From positions 10,416,001-10,480,000 of the forward strand of contig NC_092350.1 in assembly GCF_963676685.1 (NCBI RefSeq): 64,000 bases of DNA, written 5' to 3'. Below, piece by piece: positions 34,155 to 64,000 of the stretch. The first letter of the stretch is position 1. Every line of letters starts with the position of its first letter. This DNA comes from Mytilus edulis (taxonomy: Eukaryota). Under the pieces are notes generated by a model. The model was not told the DNA's origin. It made no database searches and saw only the letters and a list, made by a program, of their open reading frames with translations. The position numbers and the translations under genes were made by a program.

Positions 34155-34341
34155 NNNNNNNNNNNNNNNNNNNNNNNNNNNNNNNNNNNNNNNNNNNNNN
34201 NNNNNNNNNNNNNNNNNNNNNNNNNNNNNNNNNNNNNNNNNNNNNNNNNNNNNNNNNNNNNNNNNNNNNNNNNNNNNNNNNNNNNNNNNNNNNNNNNNNN
34301 NNNNNNNNNNNNNNNNNNNNNNNNNNNNNNNNNNNNNNNNN
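34155..34341. other. Assembly gap (N run)
   Basis: Run of N. Confidence 1.
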
Positions 34342-42778: not shown

Positions 42779-45700
42779 AAAAGTCTTGAATTTAAAATGG
42801 ATTGATTGTATTTATAACACCCCTTCTCAATTTCGAACCTATTATATTTTATAGTCATTAGTGTATTGTTGACCTCTATGTTTCTTCTGTTGTTTTTTAT
42901 TTTTGTATTTCTTAAACGCATCCCCTTGCATTCTTATCTATTGTTTCCAGACTATACATTTTTTTATGAATCAGCAGGCAATGAGACACTGACTATATCT
43001 ACTAGAGAATAGTTTAAACAAGTAAAAACAATCACGCAATTACAGATTTTCGACAACTTTGGATATACATATTCATAATTTCCGATGATAGAGTAGTATT
43101 AACTTAAACCAAACGATCAACGATCTGTTATATTAATGAATATTCCTAATAATAGTTAACTAGAAAATATCGTCTAAATCCGGGAGGTAACTCTGTAGGA
43201 ATCCTGTACACCTTCAATCCACTTTTTGATTGAAGCTCTGAAAATATATGAAAATAAAATATTTCAAACTGTATACAAATAAAAATACAAAGATTATAAA
43301 AGATGGACCAAATAACTAAATTAATACTTCTTATATTTTCCAATGTGAAAGAGATTTATTTCCTTTTACTTAAATTAAAATACAAGAACATATCACACTG
43401 CATACATAAGCAGGAGTTAACAATGTGCAATTGCAATTAAAAACAATTAGATTTAAAAAAAATCTTTTTATACAGTTTTTTTCTTGTTCTAAGGATACAG
43501 TTTCAGAGATAGTCCACTCTGCAGACTTAAGAGAGTAAAAGTAAAACTAAACTACAGCATACCAGTCAGTTATTTAAGCATGGACAGATAAATTTGTAAA
43601 TAAAAACAGGTGTGCATAATAATTTTTCTAAAAATCACCTTTACCAGTTTCAATAAAGATGTCCCGGGAAATTGACATTTCAAACATGTTACTATTACAT
43701 GTATACAATCAGTGCTCATCTTTTAACTACTAATTAGGAATCTTTCTAAATTTAGCAGCTACATATGTATGAATACTTTATACATGTAGTCATAAGCTTT
43801 TGAAATGTACACAGTGCAGCCTCACTTTTTAAATACCACAACAGTGGGCGAACTGGTGACAAAATATTACCTCCCCTGTAAACAGTGCGCTCTTCTGACT
43901 AGAGGTATTCGGTAAAGAAAAACGGACGATGCTGTAATTGTTTAGCTTGTTAAAAATGAGCTAGCACAAACGAACTAAGATGTGTCAACATAATGTGAAT
44001 ATGATTACGAATCAGGTAAAATATTTATTGTTAAGTTTATCACCTTATTGTATCATCATATGATAGGTAAATGCGTGAATTTTTGATTTTCAGTGTCGTT
44101 AGGGTTCAAACTTGTAATCATGCCATCCTTGATTATTTTTTTTTTAAATACTATCCAATGGTCGGAACACCTTGATTTTCTCCCAATTTGTAAAGTTGAT
44201 TATGTTGCATGATATATATTTTTATCGGTGGAAAAAAATGATATGCAGCAAAGATTGGCAGTTTTTAATTTGTGTTGCTATGTGAAATAAAGGGAAGTAA
44301 ATTAAAGTAAAAGAAGGCGCGCTTTTTCAAATAGTAAACAATTTAATTCAGATGCATAGTATTTTGTCAAATGATAAAGAATATCGGAGAAACTTGCTAG
44401 AAATTCATCTAATTTATAAAAGATATACAACATGACATACTGAAATCTGATAGGGGTAAAACCACCATACCTTGAACAAATTCAGTAAAAAAAGGGGGGG
44501 GGATGCTACGAAATTTAGATTTTATTTATTTGTTGTCGACAGCCAAAAGATGATTTGACATGCAACTAACTACTTTTTCAATTTCCTTGTAAAGTAAAAT
44601 TGGCTTTTTTGGGGGTCTCTGTTCATTGTGGTCTAATATTTTCAGGTTCTCTTTGGATTGCCAAATAATATTATAATCATCTAATTGAATGTTCAAATTA
44701 TTTTGCAGCGATGGTCTGTATGGAAGGAAGACTGTCATTTAACCCAACAGTTCCGGATGGCCCTTTTAACTAATTGCTTAACATCAATAGCGATGTAAGA
44801 TTCAAGTGTTTGATTTAGCACAAGTTTAGCCAGGTTTTCCTTGTAATTGTGGTAGAAAAACCACTAGACAGTGTCTGGCATTGAAATGATATCAAACGGA
44901 TGTTTTATGGAATAATTCTCGTACATATGGCAATCATATGCATAGGAATGTGGAGCTAGTCTCTTTCATGCAGCAATTTTTAATTTCCAATATAAACTCC
45001 GAAAAGACAGGGGCATAGAAATGTATACCAATGAGAAACATTTTTTGTGAATAAAATCATTCCAAAACTTAAATGTGTCATTAGTGTTGCATTATTTATC
45101 AGTAGAGATAATCAGATTCCAGTAATATTGCCCAACTGAAGGTTTTTGTTGGTAATGTTTTGTAAATCTTAGTTGTTTTGACAAGTTGGGCTGTGCAGGT
45201 TGCCCGGCTGCCCCTTTCAGTGTGAGACAATATTTTGTTTATTGTAAACAAAATCACTGATTCAAGACTGGAGCGGGCCCCTTTTATGCAGTTAGTGCGA
45301 ACCCCTTAGGTTTCAACCATTACATGCAATACGGGGGGAGGAGGAAGATTTTTTTTACCGCGTCAAACATTTTTCCTAATAATAATACATTGAGATTTAA
45401 AATATACTTTGCTATATGTAGTGTTTATATTAAAGTATTGCCAACAAAATTCATTAAATTTGGGATCATAATATTGTTTAAGAAAAACCCTTACCCCCTC
45501 CCCTGTACATCATAAAAGTGCATAATCTTCTGTAACACACGTGCATGGTTAATTCGGATCACATATTTTCTATTCCGATATTATCAGAATTCGAAGGTTC
45601 ATATCATTTACAATATCATTCAAAAATTTTCTGGGATTTTTTTTTACTATCAACGTTGAACCTCGAGGTTACACACATTGTAGTAAAAAAAAATCCAATA

Positions 45701-47173
45701 AAAACGTTGAATGTAAATGATATGCACCTTTAAAATCTTATATTGTAGGACTCATGTTGTTCAAACATAATGTGTTGATCAATTATGGTATGATGATTTT
45801 GATAAACTTCACATTAGGTTATCTTTCACGTATATTGATTACATAATATCGAGTTGTCCCAACGATATACTTGTCGGTGTGCTCGATCATACGAATTTAC
45901 CGACATTCATATAGACAAAATGACACAACTTTGAAAAATTCTTGTGACGAAACTACATTTCGGAACACGTTAAAAATTGGATACTCAGAAAGCTACATTA
46001 TTAAGGTTTGATATATATTTTTTTTTTTAAAAAAAAGAAAAATATGCAGTCAAATCTGGCAGTTTTTTACACACCCCTATGTTGAACAATAGGTTGTTCA
46101 ATTAACAGCATGTTTGGCAATAAAAAAATCATATATTAACAAATTTAGCATTAACATATACTTTATTTATAGTGGTTGTATAAAAGTTAGATAATGGTTT
46201 TGTGTTTTAAGAGATATTCATCCCTATGCATATCGGTTTTTATGCGTAAATTGTCTCTCCTGTTTTTAGACCTTTTCTATCTCTTTCATAAGAAGAGTGA
46301 CTTTTCTATTGTTCTAGTGTCACTGGAAATCCCACTGACAATTGGTACATCACTGAATGAATAAATTATTGCGCCTTGTCTATTTTTCTCCACCAATTGG
46401 AAAAAAAAATTCATCCGCACACATGTTCACATCATTTATAAGGCACATAGAGCACCCAAAATAGCTGCATTTTAATCGCAAAATAAAGGTATTAAAAAAA
46501 AAGTTCTTTCTGTAACACACAATTGATGAAGACAAAGTTTTCAATGAGAATTTAAGGTGGACTACTTGGACCCGTACCGAAAATATATTTCAGAAATATA
46601 AGATAATTGAATCTTCTCATGTTGTCACAGTATAATACACAATATAAGTAAAAATTACATACAAAAAGCATCTAAAAAAAACAGTGAGAAAATAAGACCT
46701 GAGAAAAATATAACCACAGAAATTAGAAAGAAATACATTTTAATAATTCTGCAATTAAAAGATGGATTGTGTTGTTCTTGTAGTATGTTTTTTCTTACCT
46801 TTTTCTATTTATGTATACATGTATATTATTTTTTTCAGGGCGGTATACCAGAAAATGTATAACATTCTTGTTTTTTTTCTGTAGGATTTGGAAGAAAATA
46901 TGTATGTCTCTCTGTCTCTCTCTCTCTATATTTATCCTTTTATTTCTTTCCTTTGCATGTTTTGAAACAAGTTTCTCTTTATTTTTCTTCTTCTTTCAAT
47001 ACAGTAACCTGACTGTCTTGGTCTAATCTTAGTGCAAAATAAAAAGACAAATAGAAAGAAGAATAAAGAAAGATGTGGAGAAAGAAGAATAAAGACAGAT
47101 GGTGGAGAGGGGGTTTCAGCTATATTTGATTTTGATGTACAACATATTCAGACTCTTTTTGAAAAATATTGGT

Positions 47174-47189
47174 GGCCCTTAAAAGGGCC
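47174..47189 (-). terminator. Histone H3 mRNA 3' stem-loop with downstream purine-rich element
   Basis: GGCCCTTTTAAGGGCC-ACCA, then CAAAAAGAG (47161-47153). Confidence 0.95.
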
Positions 47190-47214
47190 GTTATTGTATA
47201 GAGTAAATGTCAGT

Positions 47215-47792
<578 letters not shown>

Positions 47793-48536
47793 CTGATCTG
47801 GAAGTTACTTTCACAGCTTTCAATCCCTTTTTGGACTGAAGCTAACAATTGTTCACCCCAAGCTAACATTTGGCACACATTTGTTTCTATTCTGTTTTGT
47901 TGTGATCGTGTCAACGAAAATTTAAATCAGAAAAAAAAGTACTCAAGAGTAATGAAGAATTGAATTATTCTTTATTCAAATAATAAATAATTGGTTAATC
48001 AACAGTCTGACACGAAATTAATAATTGACAGGAAAATAAAGTAAATTAAATAGCAAAATAGAAAAAAAAAGAAGAAAAAAACATCATCCATCCATTTTGA
48101 TCAGTATCCGATTGGTATAGACATGCAGCCGTTTTCTTAGAGCGTGTCGCCTGTTTCTCGTATAAAGACATGCTTATAACAGTACACAACTGTCACTCGT
48201 CTCAGTGTCTTGAAAGGGTTCTTAAGACAGAGAGAACACTTTGTAATATCTATAGTCTTTGTATTCTCTAGCTATATTCTCTGTATTCTCTATAGTCTAG
48301 TATACTGCACGCATACTGGGAAACTTGCTCATTGTTAAAGTATTATTTATTGTTTATATACGATTTTGCCGAATAAAACTGATTTCAGCTAAAAAAAAAA
48401 TAATCTACACAACTATAAATATACGCATAAGTACTTTGTATTAGAACACAAACTATATATTATATATTTAAGAGAATGTGACAGCAGAAGAAGAAAATAA
48501 GCCAGCTAGATCACAGACAAGACAGACACACACACA

Positions 48537-48565
48537 ACGAACGAACGAACGAACGAACGAACGAA
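48537..48565. repeat. (ACGA)n microsatellite
   Basis: About 7 copies. Confidence 0.9.
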
Positions 48566-48998
48566 TATATTTATATGAAAATAAGGTCAAAGATTGTAAT
48601 TTGTGTGCGTAAATTATATAATATAATATATAGGACTGCAACTAATTTACACAACAAACGATACAAATATGCAACATTGACCACTAACAACTGAGTTTTT
48701 CTTCCTCTCGTGCTTGCGCATTTCCGTCGAATATACGTTATATGGTTGTATATTTTCTTGGACTTGTATAAGAAAAGAAAGAAAGAAAAAAAAGAAACAT
48801 GTCTTGTTCTTCATTTTTTTCACACCAACTATTGTAATATATAATAATAAAGTAGACACCTGTATATTGTTTGCAAAGAAAAAAGAAAACAGAAAATAAA
48901 AAGACAGAGAAATGGAGGGAGTGAGCTATGTTTGAGATTGCTTTCTGCATTCAACTAAATTGTACAACAAAATCAGATTCTTTTTGAAAAATGTTGGT

Positions 48999-49014
48999 GG
49001 CCCTGAAAAGGGCC
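48999..49014 (-). terminator. Histone H2A mRNA 3' stem-loop with downstream element
   Basis: GGCCCTTTTCAGGGCC-ACCA, then CAAAAAGAA. Confidence 0.95.
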
Positions 49015-49044
49015 GTTGTAAGTGAAGTTTCTGTTGTGTTGACT

Positions 49045-49428
<384 letters not shown>

Positions 49429-49475
49429 TTAATACGTTGTTTGACTTGAACAAGTATAAACAATGATTATCCCAA

Positions 49476-50101
49476 TATATATGTGGTGGTGTTTAACGAC
49501 CTTGACTGGCCTTTCAGCCCTCGCACGGTCGGCTCGGTGCCCGAAGGCGTTTGGTGAGCTTTAAATATTCTGGAGCCATGGGTCAGGAACAAGTAGTGGA
49601 GGTCGCAATATGGAGGCCGCCATCTTGGTTTTGGTGAGTTGTTTTTGGTTTTTGACTATTTTGTTGTTTATTCTTCACTAACGGCTGCTTTCAGGGCCAG
49701 TTTGGTCAGCTTGGCAGCCCGCTAGCCTCGATGATGGAGTACTGGTAGATGATCTCGGACGTAGTTCGAAAGATGACAGGAAGCATTATCAGGACCAAAG
49801 CCGTGAGGCAGTGAAATGAAGGTCGTATCACCCAACAGCCTAGGATACAGCCCTCGGACGTTAATCGGCATAACACTCCCCATAATACAATGGTTTTGGA
49901 GTGCATGTTAACGCGGGTACGCCAACTACTACGTCTATCTGTACGGCATGGATCGGTTTCTGTCATCTTAAGTAGTAAGTCGTTGATATCTAACTGTAAA
50001 CCCTCATCGAAGATAGCGGGTAAAGGAGAGCTGGCCCAGCACGTCCGTTCAGCTGTAATGACTGAGACGTGACTGGATTGTGTTTTGAATGGTAATGGAT
50101 G
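49476..50101 (-). mobile_element. Non-autonomous ~620-bp retroelement, copy U1 (subfamily A)
   Basis: Flanked by GATTATCCCAA (49465-49475, 50102-50112); 3' stem-loop plus TTAAAC tail. Confidence 0.85.
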
Positions 50102-50112
50102 GATTATCCCAA

Positions 50113-50165
50113 TATGTGGTGGTGTTTAACGACCTTGACTGGCCTTTCAGCCCTCGCACGGTCGG
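50113..50165 (-). mobile_element. ~55-bp mini-element S1 (3' stem-loop only)
   Basis: Matches the U1 3' end; flanked by ATTATCCCAA. Confidence 0.8.
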
Positions 50166-50176
50166 TATTATCCCAA

Positions 50177-50780
50177 TATGTGGTGGTGTTTAACGACCTT
50201 GACTGGCTATACAGCCCTCGCACGGTCGGCTCGGTGCCCGAAGACGATTGGTGAGCGTTTGAATAATTTCTGCCGTGGGTCAGGAACAAGAAGTAAGGAC
50301 GCCGAATGGAGGCCGCCATCTTGGTTTTGGTGAGTTGATTTTGGTTTGTTTACTATTTTGGATTTTACTTCTTAACAACGGCTGCTTTCAGGGCCAGTTT
50401 GGTCAGCTTGGCAGCCCGCTAGCCTCGATGATGGAGTACAGGTAGATGATCTCGGACGTAGTTCGAAAGATGACAGGAAGCATTATCAAGACCAAAGCCG
50501 TGAGGCAATGAAATGAAGGTCATATCACCCAACAGCCTAGGATACAGCCCTCGGACGTTAATCGGCATAACACTCCCCATAATACAATGGTTTTGGAGTG
50601 CATGTTAACGCGGGTACGCCAACTACTACGTCTATCTGTACGGCATGGATTGGTTTCTGTCATCTTAAGTAGTAAGTCGTTGATATCTAACTGTAAACCC
50701 TCATCGAAGATATCGGGTAAAGGAGAGCTGGCCCAGCACGTCCGTTCAGCTGTAATGACTGAGACGTGACTGAAAAAATT
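50177..50780 (-). mobile_element. Non-autonomous retroelement copy U2 (subfamily B-like)
   Basis: Flanked by GTATTATCCCAA (50165-50176, 50781-50792). Confidence 0.85.
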
Positions 50781-50792
50781 GTATTATCCCAA

Positions 50793-50848
50793 CAACAAAT
50801 GGAAGTTTTTAACGACCTTGACTGGCTATACAGCCCTTGCACGGTCGG
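50793..50848 (-). mobile_element. ~55-bp mini-element S2
   Basis: Tail matches U4; same 5' breakpoint as S1. Confidence 0.8.
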
Positions 50849-52812
50849 TATTATCCCAACTACTACTAAATAGAGTTTAATGGCGGCTACCCTTGCGGGT
50901 ATTGCGCCAGATTACCTTATATAAAAACATTTCAAGTAAATGTTTTAGAATTATCATTATTTAGGTATAAGCCTATATTATATATTCATATTATAGAAAT
51001 TTGTGAGTTTTTTTGTTTTTTTTCCCCTTAAATTTAATCTTATTTAAATCTGAACTATAGTGTTTATTTTAATTATCTTGATTATCTTTTGGTTAATTTA
51101 AAGTACGAAAAAGAAATATATGTGAACTTATTATTCCATCATTTGTAACTTAGCTTTCTTTGTTTATGAATATTAAATACATTGGTAAATAGGTGTGTTT
51201 GTTGTTTATACATGAAAAATGTAAGTATCTTATACTCTTTGATAGACATATCTGACTTTTACAAATATGCAAATCCTAGAAGGGGTCCGACATATTCCCG
51301 TACATGGTATATACATTAATACAATTATACCGCGGCTCGTACGTCCTTGGTAAACTGTGATTCTCTGTATATTGAATTTGACTAAAGATAGCACCCTCAC
51401 TTATAAAAGATTCTTGAACTTACGTTGTAGAATAAAAAAAATATATAATATATATATTACTGTGTATGTATAATTAGAATCTGTAATGTATTGTTATAAC
51501 ATATTTGTGTGTAATAAATTGCAAGTGTTGATATTGTGCAGTTATGTTCAGTATAGATACAAGAGAGTGCTATCTTGGTAGTACCTGATCTAGTGTACTA
51601 CTTCAAAAAATAAAAACTTTCGTAGAAGTTTTAGTGTATATTGTCAAATTCAACGGGGTTATGTTTCTTTTATTTAGAAATCATAAACTGATAAATGATA
51701 CCCTCCAGCTCTGTTACAACTTTTAAAAAGGCCAATATTTAGAAATGAAAAAACTAAAAAGAAAAGGTAAATAATATATTTCTACCAAATTATTTGTTTT
51801 TGGTGTCATCCGTTTAGACTGGAGTTGTTTCCCTTGCACTGTAAAGAAATAAATTGTAAATACCTGCAGCCGTTAAGCTACCACGTGGTAACCATGTGCT
51901 ACAGGCAGACAGGGCGAGAGGGCTGTAAACAAACAATTTCCAGTCTAAACGGATGAATTAGCAGCCGTGACTAAAAATGATAGACAATAATACCAATACA
52001 AGGTTAGTATTTACACGGTGCATTGTTTTTGGTCGTTGTAAAATATGCTGGTTGGTTCTAAAATCATCATATCACAAGGACCTGGGTTCTGGCAAGCCAG
52101 TGCCCTTAAAGAAAAATATCCCACAATAAGATAACTCATCTCGTCCGTCGACCCCATGTATAACCCTATCAATATTTTAGCTGCGGTGTCAATAGTTTAT
52201 CCATTGACAGCAGCTGAATCACATTCCTCATAGTGTTAGTTAGGTACTTATATATATACAATGTACATGCAGTTAATTCTTGTTGTGAGGTTTGTGTCCC
52301 CAATTTGATTTGGGATGGACCGACGAGAGAGTGCTTGTGATTGATGATTTCTGGGAGATATGTCAGACTCCTGTGGCTTGATATTTTACATATGATCTCA
52401 TGTATTTATCAGCAAGATGAGATTTATAATATTAAAAATCAACTGCTAATTATTTTAATCTAATTTATTTTCACTTTCTAACTTAGATTTTCTCTTATCT
52501 AGAGTTAATTTAATCGGTTGTTACAAATGTAATTAGTATTTTGAATATTTGAGATGCCTTGTCATACTTGTTAAAATCCATGGGTTGTTGTCCAGTGACT
52601 AATATTTCAAAGTTTTATTTTAGAAATAAGTAATTTTACTAGGCCTATAGTTTATGTCATTTTTCTTTTCCTATACTAATAATATCTGTAGGTTTTCTAA
52701 CCCCTACCAAAAATATCTTATTAAAATAATTATAAGCATGTTTTTACAAAATTTACACTAGAAACTAGAAATATATATTGAGGTTTTTTGTATTTTCTGA
52801 ATAATTTTACTT

Positions 52813-54561
52813 TTATCGCATACCCGTGTTTATTAAATAATCCCATATTGGGATAAGGGTCTGAGAATATCCTGAAAATAAATTTTTATACGAGAGATCT
52901 TTTACACCGGTTGATTCAAACTTTTCCATCATTTTATGTCTTTGTGGTATGTACTTATTACAGTTAAACAGGTAGTGTTGCATGTCGTCCACTACTAAAC
53001 ATGTGTCACACAGTTCACTATTACATTTACCCATTGTGTATTTGAATTTATTAGTGAATATATAACTTGATCTAAGTTTAAATAGAGTTCTTTCTCTTTC
53101 TCTTGTACTCTTTGGTATGGTAATACAAAAGTTAACATCTTTTTGAATAGCGTGTAGTTGTTTACTTTTAGTGTTGTTTTCCCAGTATTGTTGCCACATT
53201 TTTTTTAATAAATTTTTACATAAACATTTGATATCTTCTTTGTAAAGTGGTATACTAGTTATACATGTCTCTATTGATAGAGCCTTTTTAGCTGCTGTGT
53301 CTGCCATTTCATTACCACTTAAACCCACATGACTGGGTATCCATTCTAAAATTATATTCAAACCTAATTTGGACAGTTTACTGTATATATATTGGATGTC
53401 ATAAATTATTTGTGTTTTAACTTTAAATATACTTCCTGTAATAGCTTTTAGTGCTGACAGTGAATCTACAAATATTACAGTATTTTCTGGTTGAAATTCT
53501 TCTAACCAATATAAAGATAAAAGTATGGCTGTCAATTCACACATAAATATTGAAACATGATTTTGTAATTTAAAACCTTTTTTTACTTTAAGTTCTGGAA
53601 CGACAAAAGCACATGCATTTGTGTTGTTTTCTGGATTCTTAGATCCATCTGTATATATTTTTAAAAAATTACTATACTTGTTATCAATGAGGATATTTCC
53701 TTCACTTTTAATTAGGTGAGGACTATCCTTTTTAGTAATAATATTTGTAAGTTCCGTTTTGACCTGTGGTTTTAGAACATGCCATGGTGGGGTAGGGAAC
53801 TCTTTACATTTGTATACAGTATTAATATCTACATTATATTTATTCATAGTATCATGTGCAGTAACACAATATGGTTTTTGATTTTCTTTAATTTTTTCCT
53901 TATTAAATTCATATATAGCATTTTCTTGTAAACTTTTTATAGTTGGGTTTGTGTCATTTAGACTAAATATATTCAAAAAAGACTTAGTAATAAGACTTTT
54001 TCTTCTCAACCCATATGGGGGGTCACCAATTTCAGTCTGTAATCCACTTATACTGGCAGTTTTATGAGCACCTGCACATATCCTTAATGCTTGGGCTTGA
54101 ATACTATCTAGTTTTTTCTTGACAGAGTAGGAGGCTGAGTTATAAACCTCACAGCCATAATCTATCTTTGACCTTATCATTGATATATATATTGTTCTCA
54201 GGGTAGAACAATTTGCACCCCATTTAGTACCAGTTAATAATTTCATGCAGTTCAACACCCTTGAACATCTACTTTCTATATATTGTACATGTTTTAACCA
54301 TGTTAGTTTTGAATCGAAAATCATACCTAGAAACTTGACTTCTTTAACAAATGACAATATTGTTTCTCCAAGTTTAAGTTTAATACAAGGAGAACTACTC
54401 TTACTAAATATCATAGCTACCGTTTTTGTTTGTGATATTAGGAAACCCCATTTATCACACCAAGTATTAATTGTGTCTATATCCTCTTGCATTCTTTTTT
54501 GTAGATATTTAGAACTTTTTCCAGATAACCATATGGCACTGTCATCAGCAAATTGTGACAT
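52813..54561 (-). CDS. LINE ORF2 C-terminal part: RT (FADD), RNase H, CCHC
   Basis: FADD, YTDGS, CELTAI, VDSLSAL, WIPSHVGLSGNEMAD, CDTC..H..C. Confidence 0.92.
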   Translation of the reverse strand: MSQFADDSAIWLSGKSSKYLQKRMQEDIDTINTWCDKWGFLISQTKTVAMIFSKSSSPCIKLKLGETILSFVKEVKFLGMIFDSKLTWLKHVQYIESRCSRVLNCMKLLTGTKWGANCSTLRTIYISMIRSKIDYGCEVYNSASYSVKKKLDSIQAQALRICAGAHKTASISGLQTEIGDPPYGLRRKSLITKSFLNIFSLNDTNPTIKSLQENAIYEFNKEKIKENQKPYCVTAHDTMNKYNVDINTVYKCKEFPTPPWHVLKPQVKTELTNIITKKDSPHLIKSEGNILIDNKYSNFLKIYTDGSKNPENNTNACAFVVPELKVKKGFKLQNHVSIFMCELTAILLSLYWLEEFQPENTVIFVDSLSALKAITGSIFKVKTQIIYDIQYIYSKLSKLGLNIILEWIPSHVGLSGNEMADTAAKKALSIETCITSIPLYKEDIKCLCKNLLKKMWQQYWENNTKSKQLHAIQKDVNFCITIPKSTRERERTLFKLRSSYIFTNKFKYTMGKCNSELCDTCLVVDDMQHYLFNCNKYIPQRHKMMEKFESTGVKDLSYKNLFSGYSQTLIPIWDYLINTGMR

Positions 54562-54572
54562 AGCACAGTACT

Positions 54573-56630
54573 TTAAATTATTGGATATATATAATCATTC
54601 ACCATGATGTTAAATAGTGTAGGACTTATACAACTACCCTGTGGTGTACCATTCTGAATTATAAATATTTCAGAGTAAGTATTATTAACTTTAACTTGTA
54701 TAGTTCTGTCACTAAGAAAATCCTTTACCCATCCCAACATATTACCCCTTATACCTATTGAAGCCATTTTTATTAATAACCCATTTTTCCATAGCATATC
54801 AAATGCCTTTTGGAAATCTATAAATACACCAACTGTGAAATGTTTTTTGAGAAATGCTTTATGAATATCATTATCAATTCTAATTATTTGTTCCATAGTA
54901 TTTCTATTTTTCCTAAATCCACTTTGATTTGGTGTGTAGAAATTATTTTTTTCTAGATACCAACGTAGTCTATTATTAACCATTTTCTCCATAATTTTTA
55001 CAAAATTAGAAGTAAGGGCTATTGGTCTATATGACTGTGGGTCTGTGGGGTTTTTTCCAGGTTTAAGTACTGGTGATATAATGGAATGTTTCCATTCACT
55101 TGGAAGTTTTTGTAAAAACCAAACTCTATTGATAAAAAGTAATAACACAGACAGTGATTTGTCTGTAAATTGTTTGAACATAGAATACGTAATTTTATCT
55201 TTTCCAGGGGAGGTATCAGATGTATCACTGATAGCATCTTTTAATTCTTGCATAGTATATGGTTCATTATAACTATCAGAGTTATCCTTATAATAGTGTA
55301 ATAATTTACTGTACTCCTTTTGATCAATATCTTGTTTCTGATTTTTAAATTTTTCTGAGTAATTATGGTCACTACTGACTTGAGCATAATTTGTAGCAAG
55401 TATATCTGCTTTGTCTTGAGTAAATTCATATTTGGTATTATTATATAACAGGGTTGGTAAATTTAATTTTTTAAATGTTTTACCCAACATTGATTTTACT
55501 TTTTTCCATACATCTGATAATTTAGTATCATTATTGAGAGAGTTACAGTAGCTCTCCCAATACATAGCTTGTGCAGCTTTGATAGTTTTTCTGCACGTTC
55601 TTTCTTTTTCTCTATATATAGTGAAATCAATACCAAGACCTGAATGTTGGGCACGGTTTTTACAGGTGTTCCTTTCTTTAACACATTTAGTGCATTCAGG
55701 TGTCCACCATGGTACCTGTGGTTTTTTAGGTTTATTATTTTTTAATTTGACTGGGATGCACTCCCCAGCTATTTTGAGTATTTTGTTTGTTAGTCTTGAA
55801 CATGTTTCTTCTATATTGTCAGAAATCATGTCAGGACTCAAATGTTCATTACACTTGCTGGAGAATGCCTCCCAGTCTGCTTTCTTATAATTATATACAG
55901 ATTCAGTTTCATCAATTTGCATTTGTTTATGGCTAAAACTAATATTTACAACATGATGGTCACTGCCATAGGAACTAATGAGGTCAACTGACCATGTTAA
56001 TTTACTAGCTAAACTAGAATTACAAAAAGACAAATCAATAGGTGACAGTTCTAATGTACTGGGGTTACATCTTGTACCTGTACCATCATTAAGAAGTACT
56101 ATATCTTTATACTCAAGGAAAGAGAACAGCTCTCTTCCCTTAGTATCTATATTTTTACCGCCCCACATAGTGTGGTGGGCATTAAAGTCTCCACATAGTA
56201 TAAATTTTCCCTCTATTTGATCAAATATATTGTTATAATGGGGTAGTTTTGTATTTGATGCTGTGTCATAAAGATTGACCAGTGTAATATTATTATTATC
56301 AAAACTAAATTCAATACATGATATTTCTAAATCACTGTTAATATTCTTTTTCAGATATGGAAGATTTTCTCTGACATATATAGCTGTACCTCCATGTGAT
56401 TTGGTATTACGTACAGAAAAATCAGCTATTTTATAACCTATTACATGTGGATGATCTTGTTCGTTTTTACACCATGTTTCCTGGAAGCAAATAATATCAG
56501 GCTTCATTTGTGACATAGCTATATACGCCGCAGCATTGTTGTTAATGCCGCGACAGTTCCAATGAACAACACTGAACATTATGTTATATAATAATAAACA
56601 TGATAAATAAATAGTATAATTGATAGCCAT
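54573..56630 (-). CDS. LINE ORF2 N-terminal part: APE endonuclease and RT, frameshifted at ~54590
   Basis: WNCRG, FQETW, GDFNAH, SDH, YRPIALT, QSGFR, DFQKAFD, GTPQG. Confidence 0.92.
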   Translation of the reverse strand: MAINYTIYLSCLLLYNIMFSVVHWNCRGINNNAAAYIAMSQMKPDIICFQETWCKNEQDHPHVIGYKIADFSVRNTKSHGGTAIYVRENLPYLKKNINSDLEISCIEFSFDNNNITLVNLYDTASNTKLPHYNNIFDQIEGKFILCGDFNAHHTMWGGKNIDTKGRELFSFLEYKDIVLLNDGTGTRCNPSTLELSPIDLSFCNSSLASKLTWSVDLISSYGSDHHVVNISFSHKQMQIDETESVYNYKKADWEAFSSKCNEHLSPDMISDNIEETCSRLTNKILKIAGECIPVKLKNNKPKKPQVPWWTPECTKCVKERNTCKNRAQHSGLGIDFTIYREKERTCRKTIKAAQAMYWESYCNSLNNDTKLSDVWKKVKSMLGKTFKKLNLPTLLYNNTKYEFTQDKADILATNYAQVSSDHNYSEKFKNQKQDIDQKEYSKLLHYYKDNSDSYNEPYTMQELKDAISDTSDTSPGKDKITYSMFKQFTDKSLSVLLLFINRVWFLQKLPSEWKHSIISPVLKPGKNPTDPQSYRPIALTSNFVKIMEKMVNNRLRWYLEKNNFYTPNQSGFRKNRNTMEQIIRIDNDIHKAFLKKHFTVGVFIDFQKAFDMLWKNGLLIKMASIGIRGNMLGWVKDFLSDRTIQVKVNNTYSEIFIIQNGTPQGSCISPTLFNIMVNDYIYPII

Positions 56631-56675
56631 TTTTAATTGTATATTGTTAATACTTTATATTGGGCGATAAATGAA

Positions 56676-57914
56676 TTATATCATTTCAGTTGTAACTCTA
56701 CTAGCCATTTCCAAACCTAATGAGAGATCAAAATTTGACCCAAACATCTGTTTTACAACTATTCCTACAAAACCCATAATTGACTTTAAAGTAAAGTCTA
56801 TGGGTTTAGTAGGAGGGCTCATAGTCTGGTGCATGACAACACTAATTACAGTTACCAAGTCTTGTATGGTACATTTATCTTTTTTGGGTGGTACTGAGCT
56901 CTGATCTTTTGGGGTTTTGCTAGTTGATTTAGAGCTTTCTTTATGATGTTCATTGATTTTAAGCTGGTTTGTTGCTTGTTGTAGTGAAATATTTTTAGAT
57001 TTCACCAGCTTAAGGGCCATTTTTTGTTGGGTCCTTTGTGGACATTCTTTGTCATTAGACATATGTTTACCTTTACAGTTTACACATTTTAAATCTGTTG
57101 AGGTACATTGCTCGTTCTCATGTTCCTCTCCACATTTAATACATCTTTTTTTATTTCTACATTGGTTTGCCATATGCCCAAACCCCTGACATTTATAGCA
57201 TTGAATAGGTTTAGGTACAAATAATTTGGTATTATATGTTTTGTACCCAATATTGATTGTTGCTGGTAGCTGGGGTGTCTGAAAGAATAACTTTATGGAT
57301 CTAGATGGTTTTCTTTCACCGATTTGTTTGTCAAAGTAGGACATCCTTTGAATTTTACTAACTTTCTGGGCTTTAAGCACCGACACGATATCTTCGTCTT
57401 CAACGTTAATGTCTAGAGGCACGTTATAAATAACTCCTATTGATGAAGTTACAGATTTGGGCACACTTGTCCTAATCTGTAATTCACCAATGAGTTTGAC
57501 GCGTTTTAGCTGTTTCCACTGCGATTTGTCAATGCACTCTACTAGTATTTTCCCACTGTTAAGTGGTTTAATTCTTTTTGGGGTACCAACAGTCTCAAGG
57601 AGAATCTTTTGGATTTTTATCTGATTTTGGGTGCTAAGTTTAGTATTGGGATCAACACTCTGTAGGACTAGTAAATACTCATTACCTTTTACTGAGGGTG
57701 TATGGGGGAGAGGGGAAGGTGTATTAAGGAGGGTATTATCATTTAGGGGAGATGTACTTGCCATTCTTTTTCGTCTTTTCCTCTGTGTGGACCAGCCATG
57801 TTTTTCATATTCAGAGGATTCCATGTCTGTGGTATCAGTTTCATTGAGGGACTTATAAAATTCTTCCTCATCGAACTGACCAGAAATTGTTTTGTCCATA
57901 ATGTCGGACAACAA
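56676..57914 (-). CDS. LINE ORF1 gag-like protein with three zinc knuckles (first ATG at 57899)
   Basis: CYKCQGFGHMANQC, CIKCGEEHENEQC, CVNCKGKHMSNDKEC. Confidence 0.92.
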   Translation of the reverse strand: MLSDIMDKTISGQFDEEEFYKSLNETDTTDMESSEYEKHGWSTQRKRRKRMASTSPLNDNTLLNTPSPLPHTPSVKGNEYLLVLQSVDPNTKLSTQNQIKIQKILLETVGTPKRIKPLNSGKILVECIDKSQWKQLKRVKLIGELQIRTSVPKSVTSSIGVIYNVPLDINVEDEDIVSVLKAQKVSKIQRMSYFDKQIGERKPSRSIKLFFQTPQLPATINIGYKTYNTKLFVPKPIQCYKCQGFGHMANQCRNKKRCIKCGEEHENEQCTSTDLKCVNCKGKHMSNDKECPQRTQQKMALKLVKSKNISLQQATNQLKINEHHKESSKSTSKTPKDQSSVPPKKDKCTIQDLVTVISVVMHQTMSPPTKPIDFTLKSIMGFVGIVVKQMFGSNFDLSLGLEMASRVTTEMI

Positions 57915-58156
57915 AGAATATTGGTGAACACTTTTCAGTAGACAAGAAAAGTTGAGTATCTAACTATAATAATACTATAATAATACTGAATAAATTATTC
58001 AGATAGCAGACAATATCAATTATTTAATATTCTCAAAAAAATATCTGAAATATAAGACTATAAACACAAAATATAATGATATATTCTAATTCAGTGCAGT
58101 GCTACAAAAACACGACCGTGATGATCCGGGACTCACAACCCGAGGTATTATCCCAA

Positions 58157-59684
58157 ATATATGTGGTGGTGTTTAACGACCTTGACTGGCCTTTCAGCCC
58201 TCGCACGGTCGGCTCGGTGCCCGAAGGCGTTTGGTGAGCTTTAAATATTCTGGAGCCATGGGTCAGGAACAAGTAGTGGAGGTCGCAATATGGAGGCCGC
58301 CATCTTGGTTTTGGTGAGTTGTTTTTGGTTTTTGACTATTTTGTTGTTTATTCTTCACTAACGGCTGCTTTCAGGGCCAGTTTGGTCAGCTTGGCAGCCC
58401 GCTAGCCTCGATGATGGAGTACTGGTAGATGATCTCGGACGTAGTTCGAAAGATGACAGGAAGCATTATCAGGACCAAAGCCGTGAGGCAGTGAAATGAA
58501 GGTCGTATCACCCAACAGCCTAGGATACAGCCCTCGGACGTTAATCGGCATAACACTCCCCATAATACAATGGTTTTGGAGTGCATGTTAACGCGGGTAC
58601 GCCAACCGCTACGTCTATATGTACGGCATGGATCGGTTTCTGTCATCTTAAGTAGGTGTAAGACATAATAATGTCCTTATAAAATAATGTCCATTGCCAT
58701 GGAATGATGTCCCTCAAAAGGACAGATTTTTACTGCTAACTATATGAAATAGTGTCCACTCACAGGACAAATTTTCATAGTAGTTGCTGTTAAATTGTAA
58801 GGGAAGTAATACAAAGGTCATTACAAAGTTTTATTATACTTGAATTTTAATTAAAATATGAAGGATTGATGAGAAATTGATCAATGTACAAATGTAAACA
58901 AATAAATAATGGATGGAAGTGAATATAGAGAAATTTAAGTTCCTAGAAATTCCCAGCAAATGGAAATGACAATGAAAGAATAACAATAAGAAGGAAGTGT
59001 AAAATCAAATATGAAGAACTTTATAATATGTATTATGTCAGATAACTTGCGGAAGGCAATAGAAAATAAATAATGTCCATTGCCATAAAATATTGTCTCC
59101 ATGAAATATGGTCCATCTGCAGAACAAATTTTCGTAGTGAATGTTATTCAATTGTGTACTCAAAGGAAAATAAAATGGAACAGCATCTAACATGTATATA
59201 ATTATATTAAAAAATATAGATATGAAGATAAGGATGGTAGGAGTGCCAATGAGACAATTTTTATGTCAAAGTAACAATTAATTCAAGTTCGTAATTAAAG
59301 TTAAAATGCGTCCAGTAATAAAAAGGCAATGGATATCATTTAATACTTTAATCATATAAAAAAATGACCTGGCGGACACAATGTCCTGTGAAATAAAGGT
59401 CCATGTGGACATATTATGGTAGCGAAAAATGTCTATGTTCATGGACACTTTTTCATACCTGAGGACATGTTTTCATAGGAAATTGTGTCCAGGACACATT
59501 TAAATAAGTAAATATTGTCAAAATGTGTCCGGTGGACATTTTTTCATGGAGGACATTATTAAATCCTACATAGTAAGTCGTTGATATCTAACTGTAAACC
59601 CTCATCGAGGATAGCGGGTAAAGGAGAGCTGGCCCAGCACGTCCGTTCAGCTGTAATGACTGAGACGTGACTGATGAAATGAAT
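58157..59684 (-). mobile_element. Non-autonomous retroelement copy U3 (subfamily A), interrupted by a MITE
   Basis: Near-identical to U1; flanked by TATTATCCCAA (58146-58156, 59685-59695). Confidence 0.85.
58657..59570. mobile_element. 914-bp non-autonomous DNA transposon with TGT..ACA termini
   Basis: 21-bp imperfect TIR tgtaagacataataatgtcct / aggacattattaaatcctaca; many subterminal tgtcc/ggaca motifs; tagg/tagt flanks. Confidence 0.8.
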
Positions 59685-59695
59685 TATTATCCCAA

Positions 59696-60322
59696 CAACA
59701 AATGGAAGTGTTTAACGACCTTGACTGGCTATACAGCCCTCGCACGGTCGGCTCGGTGCCCGAAGGCGATTGATGAGCATTTAAATATTTTCTGCCGTGG
59801 GTCAGGAACAGGTAGTAAGGACGCCGAATGGAGGCCGCCATCTTGGTTTTGGTGAGTTGATTTTGGTTTTTTACTATTTTGATGTTATTCTTCACAACGG
59901 CTGCTTTCAGGGCCAATTTGGTCAGCTTGGCAGCCCGCTAACCTCGATGATGGAGTACTGGTAGATGAATCGTGGACGTAGTTTTAAAGATGACAGGAAG
60001 CGTTATCAGGACCAAAGCCGTGAGGCAGTAAAATGAAGGTCGTATCACCCAACAGCCTAGGATACAGCCCTCGGACGTTAATCGGCATAACACTCCCCAT
60101 GATACAATGGTTTTGGAGTGCATGTTAACGCGGGAACGCCAACACCTACGTCTATCTGTACGGCATGGATTGGTTTCTGTCATCTTAAGAAGTAAGTCGT
60201 TGATCATCTAACAATAAACCCTCATCGAAGATAGCGGGTAAAGGAGAGCTGGCCCAGCACGTCCGTTCAGCTGTAATGACTGAGACGTGACTGAATGGAT
60301 TGAATCCAAAATGGATTGAATG
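59696..60322 (-). mobile_element. Non-autonomous retroelement copy U4 (subfamily B), promoter-proximal
   Basis: Flanked by TATTATCCCAA (59685-59695, 60323-60333). Confidence 0.85.
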
Positions 60323-60555
60323 TATTATCCCAAGAGGTGGTAGTTTACTATTTATACCCGCAAAACGGATTGAAAGATGTTTCAGTTCTAAACCAATCAA
60401 ATCATCGCTTCTTCCAGGTAGTTAGGTTGAATGTTAGAAGGTGCTCTCTCCGAAGTTCGCGTTAAGTAAAAACTTTCAATCCGTTTTGCCGAGTATAAAT
60501 AGAAATTTTTATTAACGGCCATCATTCACTGATTACATTTCAGAGAGTATACATC
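60323..60555. promoter_or_regulatory. Bidirectional H2A/H2B-type histone promoter
   Basis: Divergent TATAAATA boxes (60356-60349 minus; 60494-60501 plus), each preceded by CTTTCAATCCGTTTTGC. CCAAT at 60393. ATCATTC cap motif at 60521-60527, about 30 nt from the plus-strand TATA. Confidence 0.8.
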
Positions 60556-60930
60556 TGTCTGTATTTAACTAATCACCACAAATAGTTAAACATGTCAGGA
60601 ATCTAATCACCACATTTAGTTAAACATGTCAGGCATGGATTAGATAATAAAATGTCGAATCAGAAAATGTATTGACTAATGTGAAAATCTGTATATATGT
60701 TTGTTCCGTCTGTGTATATGTTCTTCATGTGTGTATTTATAAACTGTTTTGTGTGATCAACGAAATTTGACGTTCACAAAGAAAAAGGCGGGGAAGAGAA
60801 ACAAAGCATTTACTGACTTAAGTATAAGCAACCCACTTGCACAAGCACTACTTTTTTCCTTTCCCCACCTCACCTTTCTATTATCCATATGTGTTTAACT
60901 TTTTGTTCATTATAACAATATAAAACAAAT

Positions 60931-62226
60931 ATGAATGTGATATATTCAAGAGCCGCCTCAGATGGCGAAGAAGGGATAAAAATAGGGAAAATGATCCCAA
61001 GGCCCTGTACCCTGCTAATACAATCTGATTACGAATCACATAAAATCACATCGGCAGAAATGCTACATTACATTAATAGCGAGATAAATCTTGAAATATC
61101 AGCCCTCATATGCTATTTTCAATCAACTGGTATAAACAAGTTCTCGGCCTCTTTTAGAGATGAACATGCAAAAGACATCTTCCAAGATACATTTAGCGAT
61201 AAAATAGAGATTCAAGATATTACATTTAATGTAGAACAAGCAGAACCCCTACAATGGGGGAAAAAAAAAAAAACTATTGACATTACTTTGTTTGGTATAC
61301 CATATGAATTAAAACCAGAGTACATAAGAAACAAAATGCAAAAATATGTAGATATAAGGGAAATAAAATATAACAACTACAAAGATTTCCCCGATATATC
61401 CAGTGGGGTCGTTACTGTTGTAGCAAACAGTATTAAAGAGGATATACCCAAAAAGATATATATAAAAGGGCAACAGATATCTACTCGATATGAAGGCCAG
61501 CCACACGGCAAAAAGTGTTTTAATTGCCAAGCATATGGACATATCTCAAAAGATTGTCCAGAGCCACAAGGTAGAATCTGGGGTTCAGCAAGAACCCACC
61601 CTACTAGAACAAGAACAAATAGTAGTGAGTCCCTATCCACACAAGACTCACAAGAATCCCAAGATTCACAAGAAACCACAATTGTAAACTCAGGGGAAAT
61701 AGAGGTAGAAATCTACCATGAAAAGGAAACATTAGAAATAACCCAAACTAACACTTCCGATTCCACCCCCTTAGAAGAAACTCTAAACGAATCAAAGAGC
61801 AGCAATGAGTCAATTGATCATGAAATCATAATCACACAAGCTCTTGAAGTCAAATTTGATAAACCTCAGTCAGAGACTGAAAAAATAAATGAAAAACAAA
61901 AAGGTAAAAAAAAGCCAAACCAAACTGATTACAATGATCTGATGGACGATTTAACAGAGATATTGGGCTCAGTTTCTGAGTCAGAGCCCGAAAATAATGA
62001 AACAGAAGAACAGCAAATAGAAAATAAAGAGTCGAATGCCAAATCTGGAGCCTCAGTGGCTCAAGGAAAAGGTACGACCCAAACCAAAAAAGAAAAAGTC
62101 CTAACAGACAAAGAAAAAAAGAGAGCAAGAACAGAAAGACAAAGAATCGAAAAAAGGAAAAATCTAAGTGATAGCGAAAATGAAGTAGAAAAAAGGAAGC
62201 CAGTGGCAAAGAAACAGATAAAATAA
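60931..62226 (+). CDS. L1/Tx1-type LINE ORF1 with a single CCHC knuckle
   Basis: TLFGIPYEL..IPKKIYIKG..RYEGQP..CFNCQAYGHISKDC and a charged C-terminus. Confidence 0.85.
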   Translation: MNVIYSRAASDGEEGIKIGKMIPRPCTLLIQSDYESHKITSAEMLHYINSEINLEISALICYFQSTGINKFSASFRDEHAKDIFQDTFSDKIEIQDITFNVEQAEPLQWGKKKKTIDITLFGIPYELKPEYIRNKMQKYVDIREIKYNNYKDFPDISSGVVTVVANSIKEDIPKKIYIKGQQISTRYEGQPHGKKCFNCQAYGHISKDCPEPQGRIWGSARTHPTRTRTNSSESLSTQDSQESQDSQETTIVNSGEIEVEIYHEKETLEITQTNTSDSTPLEETLNESKSSNESIDHEIIITQALEVKFDKPQSETEKINEKQKGKKKPNQTDYNDLMDDLTEILGSVSESEPENNETEEQQIENKESNAKSGASVAQGKGTTQTKKEKVLTDKEKKRARTERQRIEKRKNLSDSENEVEKRKPVAKKQIK

Positions 62227-62359
62227 AACAATGGTCATAAGATAAAACTAGATTTAAATTAAAATTAAAGAAAGACAAAACCTATTATATTGTATATTTT
62301 ATTATTTATTTATGATTAGTATCTTCACATTACTTCTATACTTTCTTTTACTAACTCAC

Positions 62360-64000
62360 ATGAGCACACTTCATATTATTTCACAAAATATAAGGAAAAA
62401 TATAAATACAAAGTATAAAGATGTTATCAACAGTTACCAAGATGCAAATATCATATGTCTACAAGAAACAGGGGTTTTAAAAAGATCAACCCAAGTTGAC
62501 ATTGAAGCCACTACAAATTTTAAAATTTACAGTTCCGATGGAGAAAATAGGGCAAGGGGTGTATGTATATTAATAGCAAAAGATGCAAAAGAAATACTTC
62601 AAAAACAGGTTCCAGCGACGCTAAAAGGAAATTTCATCCATATTGAATTTAAATTAGAAAGTAAAAAATATCAACTGCTAAATATATATAGCCCAGAGAA
62701 TACAACAAGACCACAAACAGAATTTTACGATCAATTAAATAAATATGTTGAACTGATAAATGTGAAAACAGACGTAGTAATTTTTGGAGGGGACTTTAAC
62801 CTGATAGCATCAGAAATAGATTCAAAAACAGGAATAATTAAAACAGGTAGAAGGACTTTAGATTTATTTAACAGTATAATTCACAAACTAAATATAAAGG
62901 ATACTTACAGATATAGAAATAAAAATAAAAGAGTATACTCATGGGCAAATTTCGATAACAGTTCAGCAACAAGAATAGACAGAATTTATCTATCTAAACA
63001 TATCTGCAATAAAATAAAAGACACCATAAATACACCATTTACAAGATCAGACCATAAAGGATATAAATTAAGAATTTTAATGGGCCATATAAAATGGGGA
63101 ACAGGATTCTGGAAGCTAAACGAATCATTATTAAAACAAAAGAAGTATACAGAACTGGTAAGAAATTTTTGGAATTCATGGGAAAAGGAGAAATATAAAA
63201 TGAATATCTTAGATTGGTGGGAAAAAGGGAAAAAATCAATAAAGGATATAACCATAAACTATAGCAAGGTAATGGCAACCAAAGAAAAATACAAATATAA
63301 GGGCTTGATACAAGAGCTAGAAGAAGAGGAAAATAAGGATACAAATGATATATCTAATGACAGAATAAATAAAATAAAAAAAGAAATAGAAACATTAGAC
63401 GATAATAGGAAAAAAGGAGTTATAATAAGATCAAGGGAGGAATATTATAATGGAGATCTAGAAAATATAGAAATTTTTGAATTAGCTGAAGAAAAAAGGG
63501 GCATAAAAAAAGAAATAAGAGAACTTTATGACAAAAATGGGATATTAAGGGAAAACAAAGAAGAAATAATAAACGTGGTTAGAGACTTTTATGAAGGACT
63601 ATATAGTAGCCAAAACATAGAAAACGGAAAAATTAAAGACTATTTGGAAGGGGTCAAAATTAATAAATTAGAGGAAGCAGATTGGATACATTTGAACCCA
63701 ATCATGACAAACGAAGAATGTTTTAAAAATACAAAAGACTTCCAAAATAATAAAACACCAGGAATAGATGGTCTAGGGAAATCATTCTATGTCGAATTTT
63801 GGGATATTATAGGCGAGGATTTGACAGAAGTAATAAATAATATTTACTTAACAGGGGAAATGACGGAATCTATGAAAACCGGCATAATTACTCTGAGTTA
63901 TAAAAATAAAGGAGATCCTAAAGAATTGAAGCAATGGAGACCCATAAGTTTATTGTGTTTTGACTATAAAATTATAACAAAGACCCTAACAAAGAAAATG
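62360..64000 (+). CDS. L1/Tx1-type LINE ORF2 (APE endonuclease and start of RT), open to the window edge and absent from the ORF track
   Basis: Hand translation of motifs: MSTLHIISQNIR, CLQET, GGDFN, RIDRIY, SDH, GFWKLN, KTPGIDG, FWD, WRPISLLCFDYKII; start and end are in the same frame. Confidence 0.9.
   Translation, partial: MSTLHIISQNIRKNINTKYKDVINSYQDANIICLQETGVLKRSTQVDIEATTNFKIYSSDGENRARGVCILIAKDAKEILQKQVPATLKGNFIHIEFKLESKKYQLLNIYSPENTTRPQTEFYDQLNKYVELINVKTDVVIFGGDFNLIASEIDSKTGIIKTGRRTLDLFNSIIHKLNIKDTYRYRNKNKRVYSWANFDNSSATRIDRIYLSKHICNKIKDTINTPFTRSDHKGYKLRILMGHIKWGTGFWKLNESLLKQKKYTELVRNFWNSWEKEKYKMNILDWWEKGKKSIKDITINYSKVMATKEKYKYKGLIQELEEEENKDTNDISNDRINKIKKEIETLDDNRKKGVIIRSREEYYNGDLENIEIFELAEEKRGIKKEIRELYDKNGILRENKEEIINVVRDFYEGLYSSQNIENGKIKDYLEGVKINKLEEADWIHLNPIMTNEECFKNTKDFQNNKTPGIDGLGKSFYVEFWDIIGEDLTEVINNIYLTGEMTESMKTGIITLSYKNKGDPKELKQWRPISLLCFDYKIITKTLTKKM

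Follow-up and report, generated by a model that had tools for sequence, protein, structure and literature searches.

How a long interspersed nuclear element (LINE) that lacks a portable promoter keeps up its transcription is an old question; the known routes are internal promoters, co-transcription with ribosomal DNA (rDNA) or small nuclear RNA (snRNA) targets, and occasional 5′ transduction. The same question is raised by a core-histone locus of Mytilus edulis in the 64,000-nucleotide stretch analyzed here (the window; G000:C7:10416001-10480000), where a retroelement, here termed LINE-B, stands in the leader of an H2B gene. Positions past 64000 are given in window-equivalent numbering, with the window joined to the 40 kb that follow it. 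LINE-B is a young, intact, low-copy LINE of the L1 superfamily in the diverged boundary unit of a histone array, and what is new is a LINE with a head acquired twice from histone mRNA that is now poised under the H2B promoter. Its 5′ end preserves, in readable form, a succession of associations with the starts of histone genes: first H4, then H4 once more, and at present H2B.

LINE-B Interrupts the Leader of an H2B Gene

The locus belongs to a tandem array of 5,738-bp core-histone units that carry H2B on the plus strand (244-618) and H4 (1371-1682), H3 (3387-3797), and H2A (5322-5699) on the minus strand (unit coordinates). Window positions 60324-60559 match the region between H2A and H2B in this unit at 99.6-100% identity. 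A 241-bp promoter query returned 169 candidates in the assembly; the 40 that were scored were all 100% identical and spaced by 5,738 bp, and the copy number of the unit is accordingly given as well over 40 (169 candidates). Contigs from other samples match 60324-60559 exactly and then run into canonical H2A or H2B. The promoter features are as follows.

60324..60559, no strand assigned: canonical H2A-H2B bidirectional promoter with the H2B leader's initial 36 nt, by identity to the unit
60348..60356, minus strand: H2A-side TATAAATAG, from the sequence, within an inverted-repeat arm
60494..60502, plus strand: H2B-side TATAAATAG, from the sequence, with the mapped cap site 30 nt downstream
60524..60524, plus strand: H2B transcription start, the A of TCATTC, from 126 RNA molecule ends with adaptor beyond (run X21)

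Run X21 is a public RNA run from another animal, which may lack the LINE-B insertion, and 6% of it was sampled. An earlier note on this DNA had described mirror-image TATA modules, a cap site in the plus-strand module followed by a histone-like 5′ untranslated region (UTR) of ~30 nt, and a bidirectional histone promoter. The modules correspond to inverted repeats (60360-60381/60468-60489, 91%, and 60345-60365/60485-60505) with TATAAATAG on each strand, and the cap site is where the 126 X21 molecules end. The 5′ UTR is likewise present, at 36 nt (60524-60559) instead of the length given. Rfam RF00032 histone 3′ stem-loops at H2A (48974-49019) and H3 (47149-47194) identify these as replication-dependent histone genes. 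The bidirectional promoter is confirmed by unit identity, by a divergent H2A/H2B pair within a tandem unit, by the stem-loops, and by the mapped H2B start. A GGATTGAAAG box lies upstream of all four histone genes.

The canonical unit was aligned to the window and the next 40 kb, and the empty and filled sites were compared. The alignment of unit positions 1-240 ends at window position 60559, and unit positions 227-5738 restart at window-equivalent 66580. The empty site reads ..GAGAGTATACATCTGTC and then AAAATG. On the 3′ side of the filled site, a 32-nt poly(A), the last base of which is window-equivalent 66580 (G000:C7:10482580), is followed by GG, a second 11-bp ATACATCTGTC, AAA-ATG, and an H2B open reading frame (ORF) identical to the canonical one. 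The LINE-B insertion comprises 6,021 bp after 60559; with the H2B cap at 60524, it therefore interrupts a 39-nt leader at +36, where 3 nt remain ahead of the ATG. Its junctions are marked by two features.

60549..60559 (5′ copy) and G000:C7:10482583-10482593 (3′ copy), plus strand: 11-bp target-site duplication (TSD) ATACATCTGTC, from the comparison of empty and filled sites
60560..60561, plus strand: two extra bases, TG, at the 5′ junction, from the filled versus empty site and the H4 gene sequence

This footprint is that of ordinary target-primed reverse transcription, and the G adjoining the H4 head described below may be a copy of the mRNA cap. The absence of an H2B ORF from the window, which had been remarked on before, arises because the LINE interrupts the leader after 60559. 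Two predictions of the earlier note proved correct: H2B resumes past position 64000, as an intact canonical ORF after the LINE, and a TSD expected near 60540-60555 lies at 60549-60559.

LINE-B Is an Intact Member of the L1 Superfamily

The element itself comprises the following parts, with a 3′ UTR of ~1.07 kb before the poly(A).

60560..60930, plus strand: 5′ UTR, 371 nt, with short upstream ORFs only, from the sequence
60931..62226, plus strand: ORF1, 431 amino acids, with one CCHC zinc knuckle, an intact ORF
62312..window-equivalent 65476 (G000:C7:10481476), plus strand: ORF2, 1,054 amino acids, with APE endonuclease, reverse transcriptase (RT), and zf-RVT

The apparently intact, sense-oriented LINE that had been reported at the H2B position is thus present with both ORFs intact, and the ~375 bp noted ahead of ORF1 are measured as the 371-nt 5′ UTR. 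ORF2 contains PF03372 and PF00078, as well as PF13966 at residues 977-1046, and gave no match to RNase H (PF00075). It matches human L1 ORF2p with E=1e-69 (residues 41-880) and R2 with E=1e-15; this much closer similarity to L1 ORF2p supports membership in the L1 superfamily. APE and RT, a C-terminal zinc-binding module, the lack of RNase H, the poly(A), and a TSD of the variable-length kind all agree with that placement. The closest relatives, at 56%, 50%, and 44% identity, carry no clade labels. In Rfam searches, only the histone stem-loops scored, and no family was found in LINE-B or in the stack of elements on the H2A side described further below.

Two Histone H4 mRNA Starts Are Stacked at the 5′ End of LINE-B

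Between the 5′ TSD copy and the body of the LINE lies sequence from the H4 gene, in sense orientation and running from the cap site to +38. This is the arrangement expected of a 5′-transduced or chimeric LINE, and it is followed by an older version of itself.

60562..60599, plus strand: young head, H4 mRNA cap site to +38 (30-nt 5′ UTR plus ATGTCAGG), 100% identity
60600..60635, plus strand: older H4 head, 5′-shortened and 91-94% identical, common to the LINE-B relatives L045 and L046

The young head derives from H4 of a second histone repeat type, with a period of ~5.76 kb, located on C5 and many small contigs. The H4 5′ UTR plus ATGTCAGG matches 60562-60599 at 100% in at least 61 repeat copies; the H4 leader of the 5,738-bp repeat type present in the window differs from the LINE-B head. 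The young head begins 30 nt after the TATAAAG of H4, at 60562, where 128 X21 molecules end, and it closes with the first eight H4 coding bases (..AAACATGTCAGG). Its start is accurate to about +/-2 nt because the window departs from H4 just upstream of the head. All X21 reads that continue past 60599 (319/319) go on into the H4 coding sequence.

The older head begins at the cap-site equivalent in L045 (90%) and is also found in L046 (83%). Since it is common to these diverged copies, it is an old feature of the family, to which the fresh head was added recently. The breakpoints of the two heads agree within 0-2 nt of one H4 position. The template RNA of the present copy began with a capped H4 5′ end, and the LINE-B RNA lineage began at least two times with a capped H4 mRNA 5′ end. 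With two stacked H4 mRNA starts at its front end, the lineage has repeatedly acquired the starts of histone genes.

H4 heads were also observed away from LINE-B. Two places in inverted orientation and separated by 212 kb, G000:C3:11253803 (+) and G000:C3:11465712 (−), have a 100% H4 head that extends to ATGTCAGG and is followed by the splice-donor-like GGTGAGTGAGTAGTTTTTCA, the continuation reading GGTGAGTGAGTAG; both H4 promoter and H4 coding sequence are lacking there. This makes a third kind of partner for the same breakpoint in H4. A single-copy contig from run X16 carries an older-type H4 head (window 60603-60635) and then GAGGTGGATCGTTATGAC.. in place of LINE-B. The X16 continuation GAGGTGGATCGTTATGAC was absent from this genome and from the examined loci, and neither the C3 partner sequences nor the partner on the X16 contig had a match among the sequences compared. 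Splicing is an unlikely origin of the breakpoint, given that H4 has no GT/GC donor after CAGG and all partners break there. GGTGAGT, which is donor-like, comes after the head at the C3 places, yet splicing would leave one G too many.

Relatives of LINE-B Are Dispersed

The earlier note had proposed that a second, unrelated LINE clade converged on this promoter, so that both directions would transcribe retroelements in S phase. On that reading, LINE-B would belong to a sequence-specific, Tx1-type family dedicated to the H2A/H2B promoter, and the two site-specific clades would systematically parasitize both directions. Such an element would account for the sense-oriented insertions in both the H2A and the H2B leader, for the repeated use (about six times) of an H2A-side site, TTGGGATAAT, and for the histone-gene origin of the LINE-B head; a weak motif, ACAT..TGTCA, is also present at the H2B, H4, and L038 sites (n=3, chosen post hoc). 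The family itself is distributed otherwise. The 3′ end of LINE-B has six other matches in the assembly: a pair at 98%, located at G000:C11:22.638 Mb and C11:61.036 Mb, and four of 76-79% that fall on three further loci. Their downstream flanks are unrelated to histones and to one another. Its 5′ UTR has two other matches, the 90% and 83% copies in L045 and L046, with non-histone upstream flanks. All of the relatives (L038, L039, L040, L041, L042, L045, and L046) occupy non-histone sites. A sequence-specific LINE would have most of its copies at one target; the flanks compared for a shared target (L038, L039, L041, L045, and L046), where they could be read, are unrelated and non-histone throughout.

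The histone arrays give the same picture. In the whole assembly, no H2B leader with a non-A continuation was found besides the one at this locus, and more than 40 other 5,738-bp units are without interruption. On the H2A side, the short element that recurs in the stack has 841 candidates on all chromosomes, mostly without TTGGGATAAT after them, and the TTGGGATAAT junction occurs in this window only. LINE-B is therefore not a dedicated histone-site element, and we regard a dedicated family as very improbable. Convergence of a sequence-specific family on the promoter is not borne out, and random placement of the other copies, which the note itself had taken to count against its claim, is what this assembly shows. 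This removes the claim of a new histone-specific LINE target. Nothing on histone-targeting LINEs was found in the library of papers searched.

Origin of the H4 Heads

With a dedicated target set aside, the heads call for another source. The explanation that we favor, at roughly even confidence, is 5′ transduction from parents inside H4 transcription units. Parent copies would have lain just inside H4 genes in sense orientation and would have been transcribed from the H4 promoter; a full-length parent RNA would have taken the H4 leader along to the next site, and LINE-B would then have been integrated by target-primed reverse transcription at H2B +36. From its place 36 nt below the mapped H2B cap, the present copy would be set to gain an H2B head next, so that the lineage would propagate through borrowed replication-dependent histone promoters. 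The anatomy of the insertion, the source of the head, its match to the cap site, and the dispersal of the relatives are shown; parents resident in H4 genes, and transcription from the H2B promoter today, are inferred. That a LINE can lie just inside a histone transcription unit in sense orientation is proved by the present copy, and the H2B insertion at +36 and the break of the H4 head at +38 are at nearly equal distances from the cap. In addition, one member of a family of ~8 copies lies in a histone leader, a target estimated at ~1e-5 to 1e-4 of the genome. Should the association be real, LINE-B expression would be tied to S phase, and next-generation copies are predicted to carry a 36-nt H2B head.

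The position of the junctions also speaks for transduction. The 5′ junctions at H2B, H4, and L046 (TATAAAAG) lie 65-68 nt below a sense TATAAA, a motif with a background frequency of 0.0016 per nt; TATAAA is absent 65-68 nt upstream of the L045 5′ junction. It is doubtful that the lineage integrates preferentially ~36-38 nt below the cap (65-68 nt below TATA), in sense orientation, at strong TATA promoters and above all at those of replication-dependent histone genes. If true, this would amount to promoter-proximal targeting based on position, use of S-phase promoters, and the addition of one leader per generation. To our knowledge, promoter-proximal targeting by position rather than by sequence has no precedent in a LINE. 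In the flank of L046 (1436-1500), CTATAAAAG stands 65 nt, and an ATG 22 nt, upstream of the junction; this copy may have its place near the 5′ end of some gene other than a histone gene.

Several observations weigh against transduction from parents in H4 genes. No LINE-B copy inside any H4 gene of the assembly was found in searches with the 5′ region of the LINE, with the junction of the two heads, and with H4 leaders that continue into a non-canonical base, an absence that is weak because the histone arrays lie largely on small unplaced contigs. The assembly thus lacks the source locus that would separate transduction from template switching. The double-head junction is unique in the assembly, the 61 H4 5′ regions listed are all canonical, and the continuation after ATGTCAGG is non-canonical at three places only. 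No shared target site was found among the flanks of the other LINE-B copies compared above. The same H4 breakpoint is joined to other sequences at C3:11253803, at C3:11465712, and on the X16 contig, and a recurrent breakpoint is explained at least as well by a discrete end of an RNA as by insertions that hit a single DNA position again and again. Two weaker points come from run X21. No chimeric reads joining the H2B leader to the LINE were present, and the 196 reads crossing 60556-60559 were all canonical H2B, with ~1 chimeric read expected because the insertion occupies one unit among well over 40 (169 candidates). Depth was 0 over 60635-61974 in the sampled 6%. With ~1 read expected and an animal that may lack the insertion, these reads neither support nor refute transcription in S phase.

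The recurrent break leads to a different account, in which the heads arose by template switching. As reverse transcription came to its end, the RT would have jumped from LINE RNA to a capped H4 RNA of short length (cap to +38), such as a transcript paused or terminated near the promoter; one such jump would be ancient and the other recent. The H2B position would then reflect array-edge units gathering insertions in open promoter DNA, and the lineage would be independent of histone promoters. For L1, template-switch chimeras have been documented, as have chimeras of mRNA first exons with L1 in which the source locus has no resident L1 (PMC11838501, PMC4476161, PMC2104539). At least three or four different sequences follow the break after ATGTCAGG, the H4-resident parent was not found in the assembly, and the boundary unit is rich in other insertions (among them the H2A-side stack and, in a degraded unit, a further insertion of 2.5 kb), all as this account would have it. 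The discrete 38-nt H4 RNA is nevertheless hypothetical, and the H4 leader has no stable structure that would set such an end (z=+1.5). The junctions have no microhomology, and the presence of a copy of this ~8-member family at +36 of another histone gene remains a coincidence. Template switching is possible, if rather unlikely.

A further alternative is that the H4 head is an internal core promoter or leader, made up of an initiator and downstream elements and kept for its function rather than as a record of histone residence. Insect LINEs usually have internal initiator and downstream promoters. In keeping with such a role, the head has been retained from the cap-site equivalent in relatives diverged by 10-17%, and L045 starts exactly there. 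A retained promoter leaves the second, fresh head unexplained, and expression of the 5′ UTR was not seen in the X21 reads; we consider it improbable that function accounts for the heads.

Other read data touch on LINE-B at several points. A few sense X21 reads were found at 61975-62242. Sample X16, which is DNA-like, contains a ~99% LINE-B copy at single-copy depth, compared with ~35-fold for the histone unit. Run X1, guessed to be RNA, yielded contigs over the ORF1 region only (60972-62203), at depths from 12 to ~700, and left the 5′ UTR uncovered. The coverage of the ORF1 region possibly reflects expression of a relative or low-complexity, K/E-rich sequence.

Comparison with Known Systems

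The anatomy of LINE-B has its parallel in mammals, where 5′ transduction and chimeras of mRNA first exons with LINE-1 have been described, including SVA-MAST2 (PMC11838501, PMC4494074). In those chimeras, as in LINE-B, host sequence lies inside the TSDs and 5′ of a near-full-length LINE, begins at an RNA polymerase II (Pol II) transcript start, and is in sense orientation (PMC11838501). Several human cases also resemble LINE-B in that the source locus has no resident LINE (PMC11838501). LINE-B differs in having an intronless, replication-dependent histone gene as donor and a break that is not at a splice donor. Its head was moreover gained twice, is stacked and family-wide, and the present site is the leader of another histone gene.

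Target-specific elements offer a second comparison. R2, R1, and Keno are co-transcribed with their targets, and SINEU elements with heads from U1/U2 snRNA genes are linked to Tx1-clade LINEs (PMC4494074, PMC4640811). The similarities (PMC4494074) include a head from a multicopy, tandem Pol II host gene and an ORF2 with L1/Tx1-like architecture, and a SINEU-type dependence on a flanking promoter is plausible for LINE-B too. LINE-B departs from target-specific LINEs in that most of its copies lie outside the putative target, and it thus lacks the site specificity that defines them. Neither paper lists histone genes among the targets (PMC4494074, PMC4640811).

Template-switch chimeric retrocopies are known from U6/L1 and from tripartite chimeras in Magnaporthe (PMC4476161, PMC2104539). 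They share with LINE-B the fusion of a cellular RNA 5′ end to a LINE 5′ end within one set of TSDs, and successive jumps can give stacked parts (PMC4476161, PMC2104539). The known examples have a complete small RNA as the 5′ partner; the LINE-B partner would be the first 38 nt of an mRNA, which would require a short RNA species.

Core-histone tandem repeats of M. edulis with h4, h2b, h2a, and h3, in two clusters, have been reported previously (cited in PMC4106214). The gene content, tandem layout, and two repeat types or loci given there agree with the present arrays; retroelement insertions in leaders, as seen here, go unmentioned.

The Array Boundary and the H2A-Side Stack

The unit that bears LINE-B is the first of its array and is 98.5% identical to the canonical unit, compared with 100% for the next units. 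Array edges escape homogenization, so insertions persist there. The H2A direction of the promoter had also been described as occupied, and it is, by a stack of elements without long terminal repeats (non-LTR elements) of a different kind at the H2A start.

49476..60323, minus strand: stack of non-LTR elements at the H2A start, with four ~640-bp non-coding units, a 3′-module fragment, and an RNase H-bearing LINE
56676-57914 (ORF1) and 52813-56630 (ORF2, frameshifted in the RT), minus strand: RNase H-bearing LINE in the stack
49045..49422, minus strand: intact H2A ORF, with the 10.85-kb stack between it and the promoter and its stem-loop at 48974-49019

Along the minus strand, the order is a ~640-bp unit; a second, split by an insertion of ~910 bp; the RNase H-bearing LINE; a third unit; a 63-nt 3′ module; and the fourth unit. 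Every element of the stack is followed by TTGGGATAAT, and the H2A leader and intact H2A ORF come after the last. The stack thus consists of six tandem insertions at one TTGGGATAAT site at the predicted H2A start. This target lies 1-2 nt before that start, which was placed from the TATA spacing and a TCATTG initiator. The ~640-bp units differ by up to 10% among themselves and so represent separate insertions. The stack elements are unlike LINE-B in bearing RNase H and a structured, non-poly(A) tail. Because double occupancy is confined to one unit and the short element is dispersed, there is no evidence of dedicated targeting on this side. Occupancy of both promoter directions belongs to a single boundary unit in decay and does not characterize the array.

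Within the stack, the insertion that splits the second short unit (58660-59571, ~910 bp) resembles a miniature inverted-repeat transposable element and has GGACAT-rich inverted ends. The frameshift at 54561-54575 (−) splits ORF2 of the RNase H-bearing LINE within the RT, so this copy is defective unless the frameshift is an assembly error. In the first short unit, the 5′ extension, which is variable (window 60307-60326), contains two occurrences of GGATTGAA, a sequence that resembles the GGATTGAAAG box upstream of H2A/H2B, H3, and both H4 types.

To the left of the boundary unit, 43170-49461 holds only degraded partial histone units, of 96% and 99% identity, with intact H3 and H2A ORFs and their stem-loops, and a 2.5-kb insertion (43842-46337) lies within these left-end units. 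Stretches of N are present at window positions 34155-34341 and at one place in the array past the window. Farther left, broken-up RT ORFs at 22169-24611 (+) mark another degraded retroelement in a GC-skewed, AT-rich stretch.

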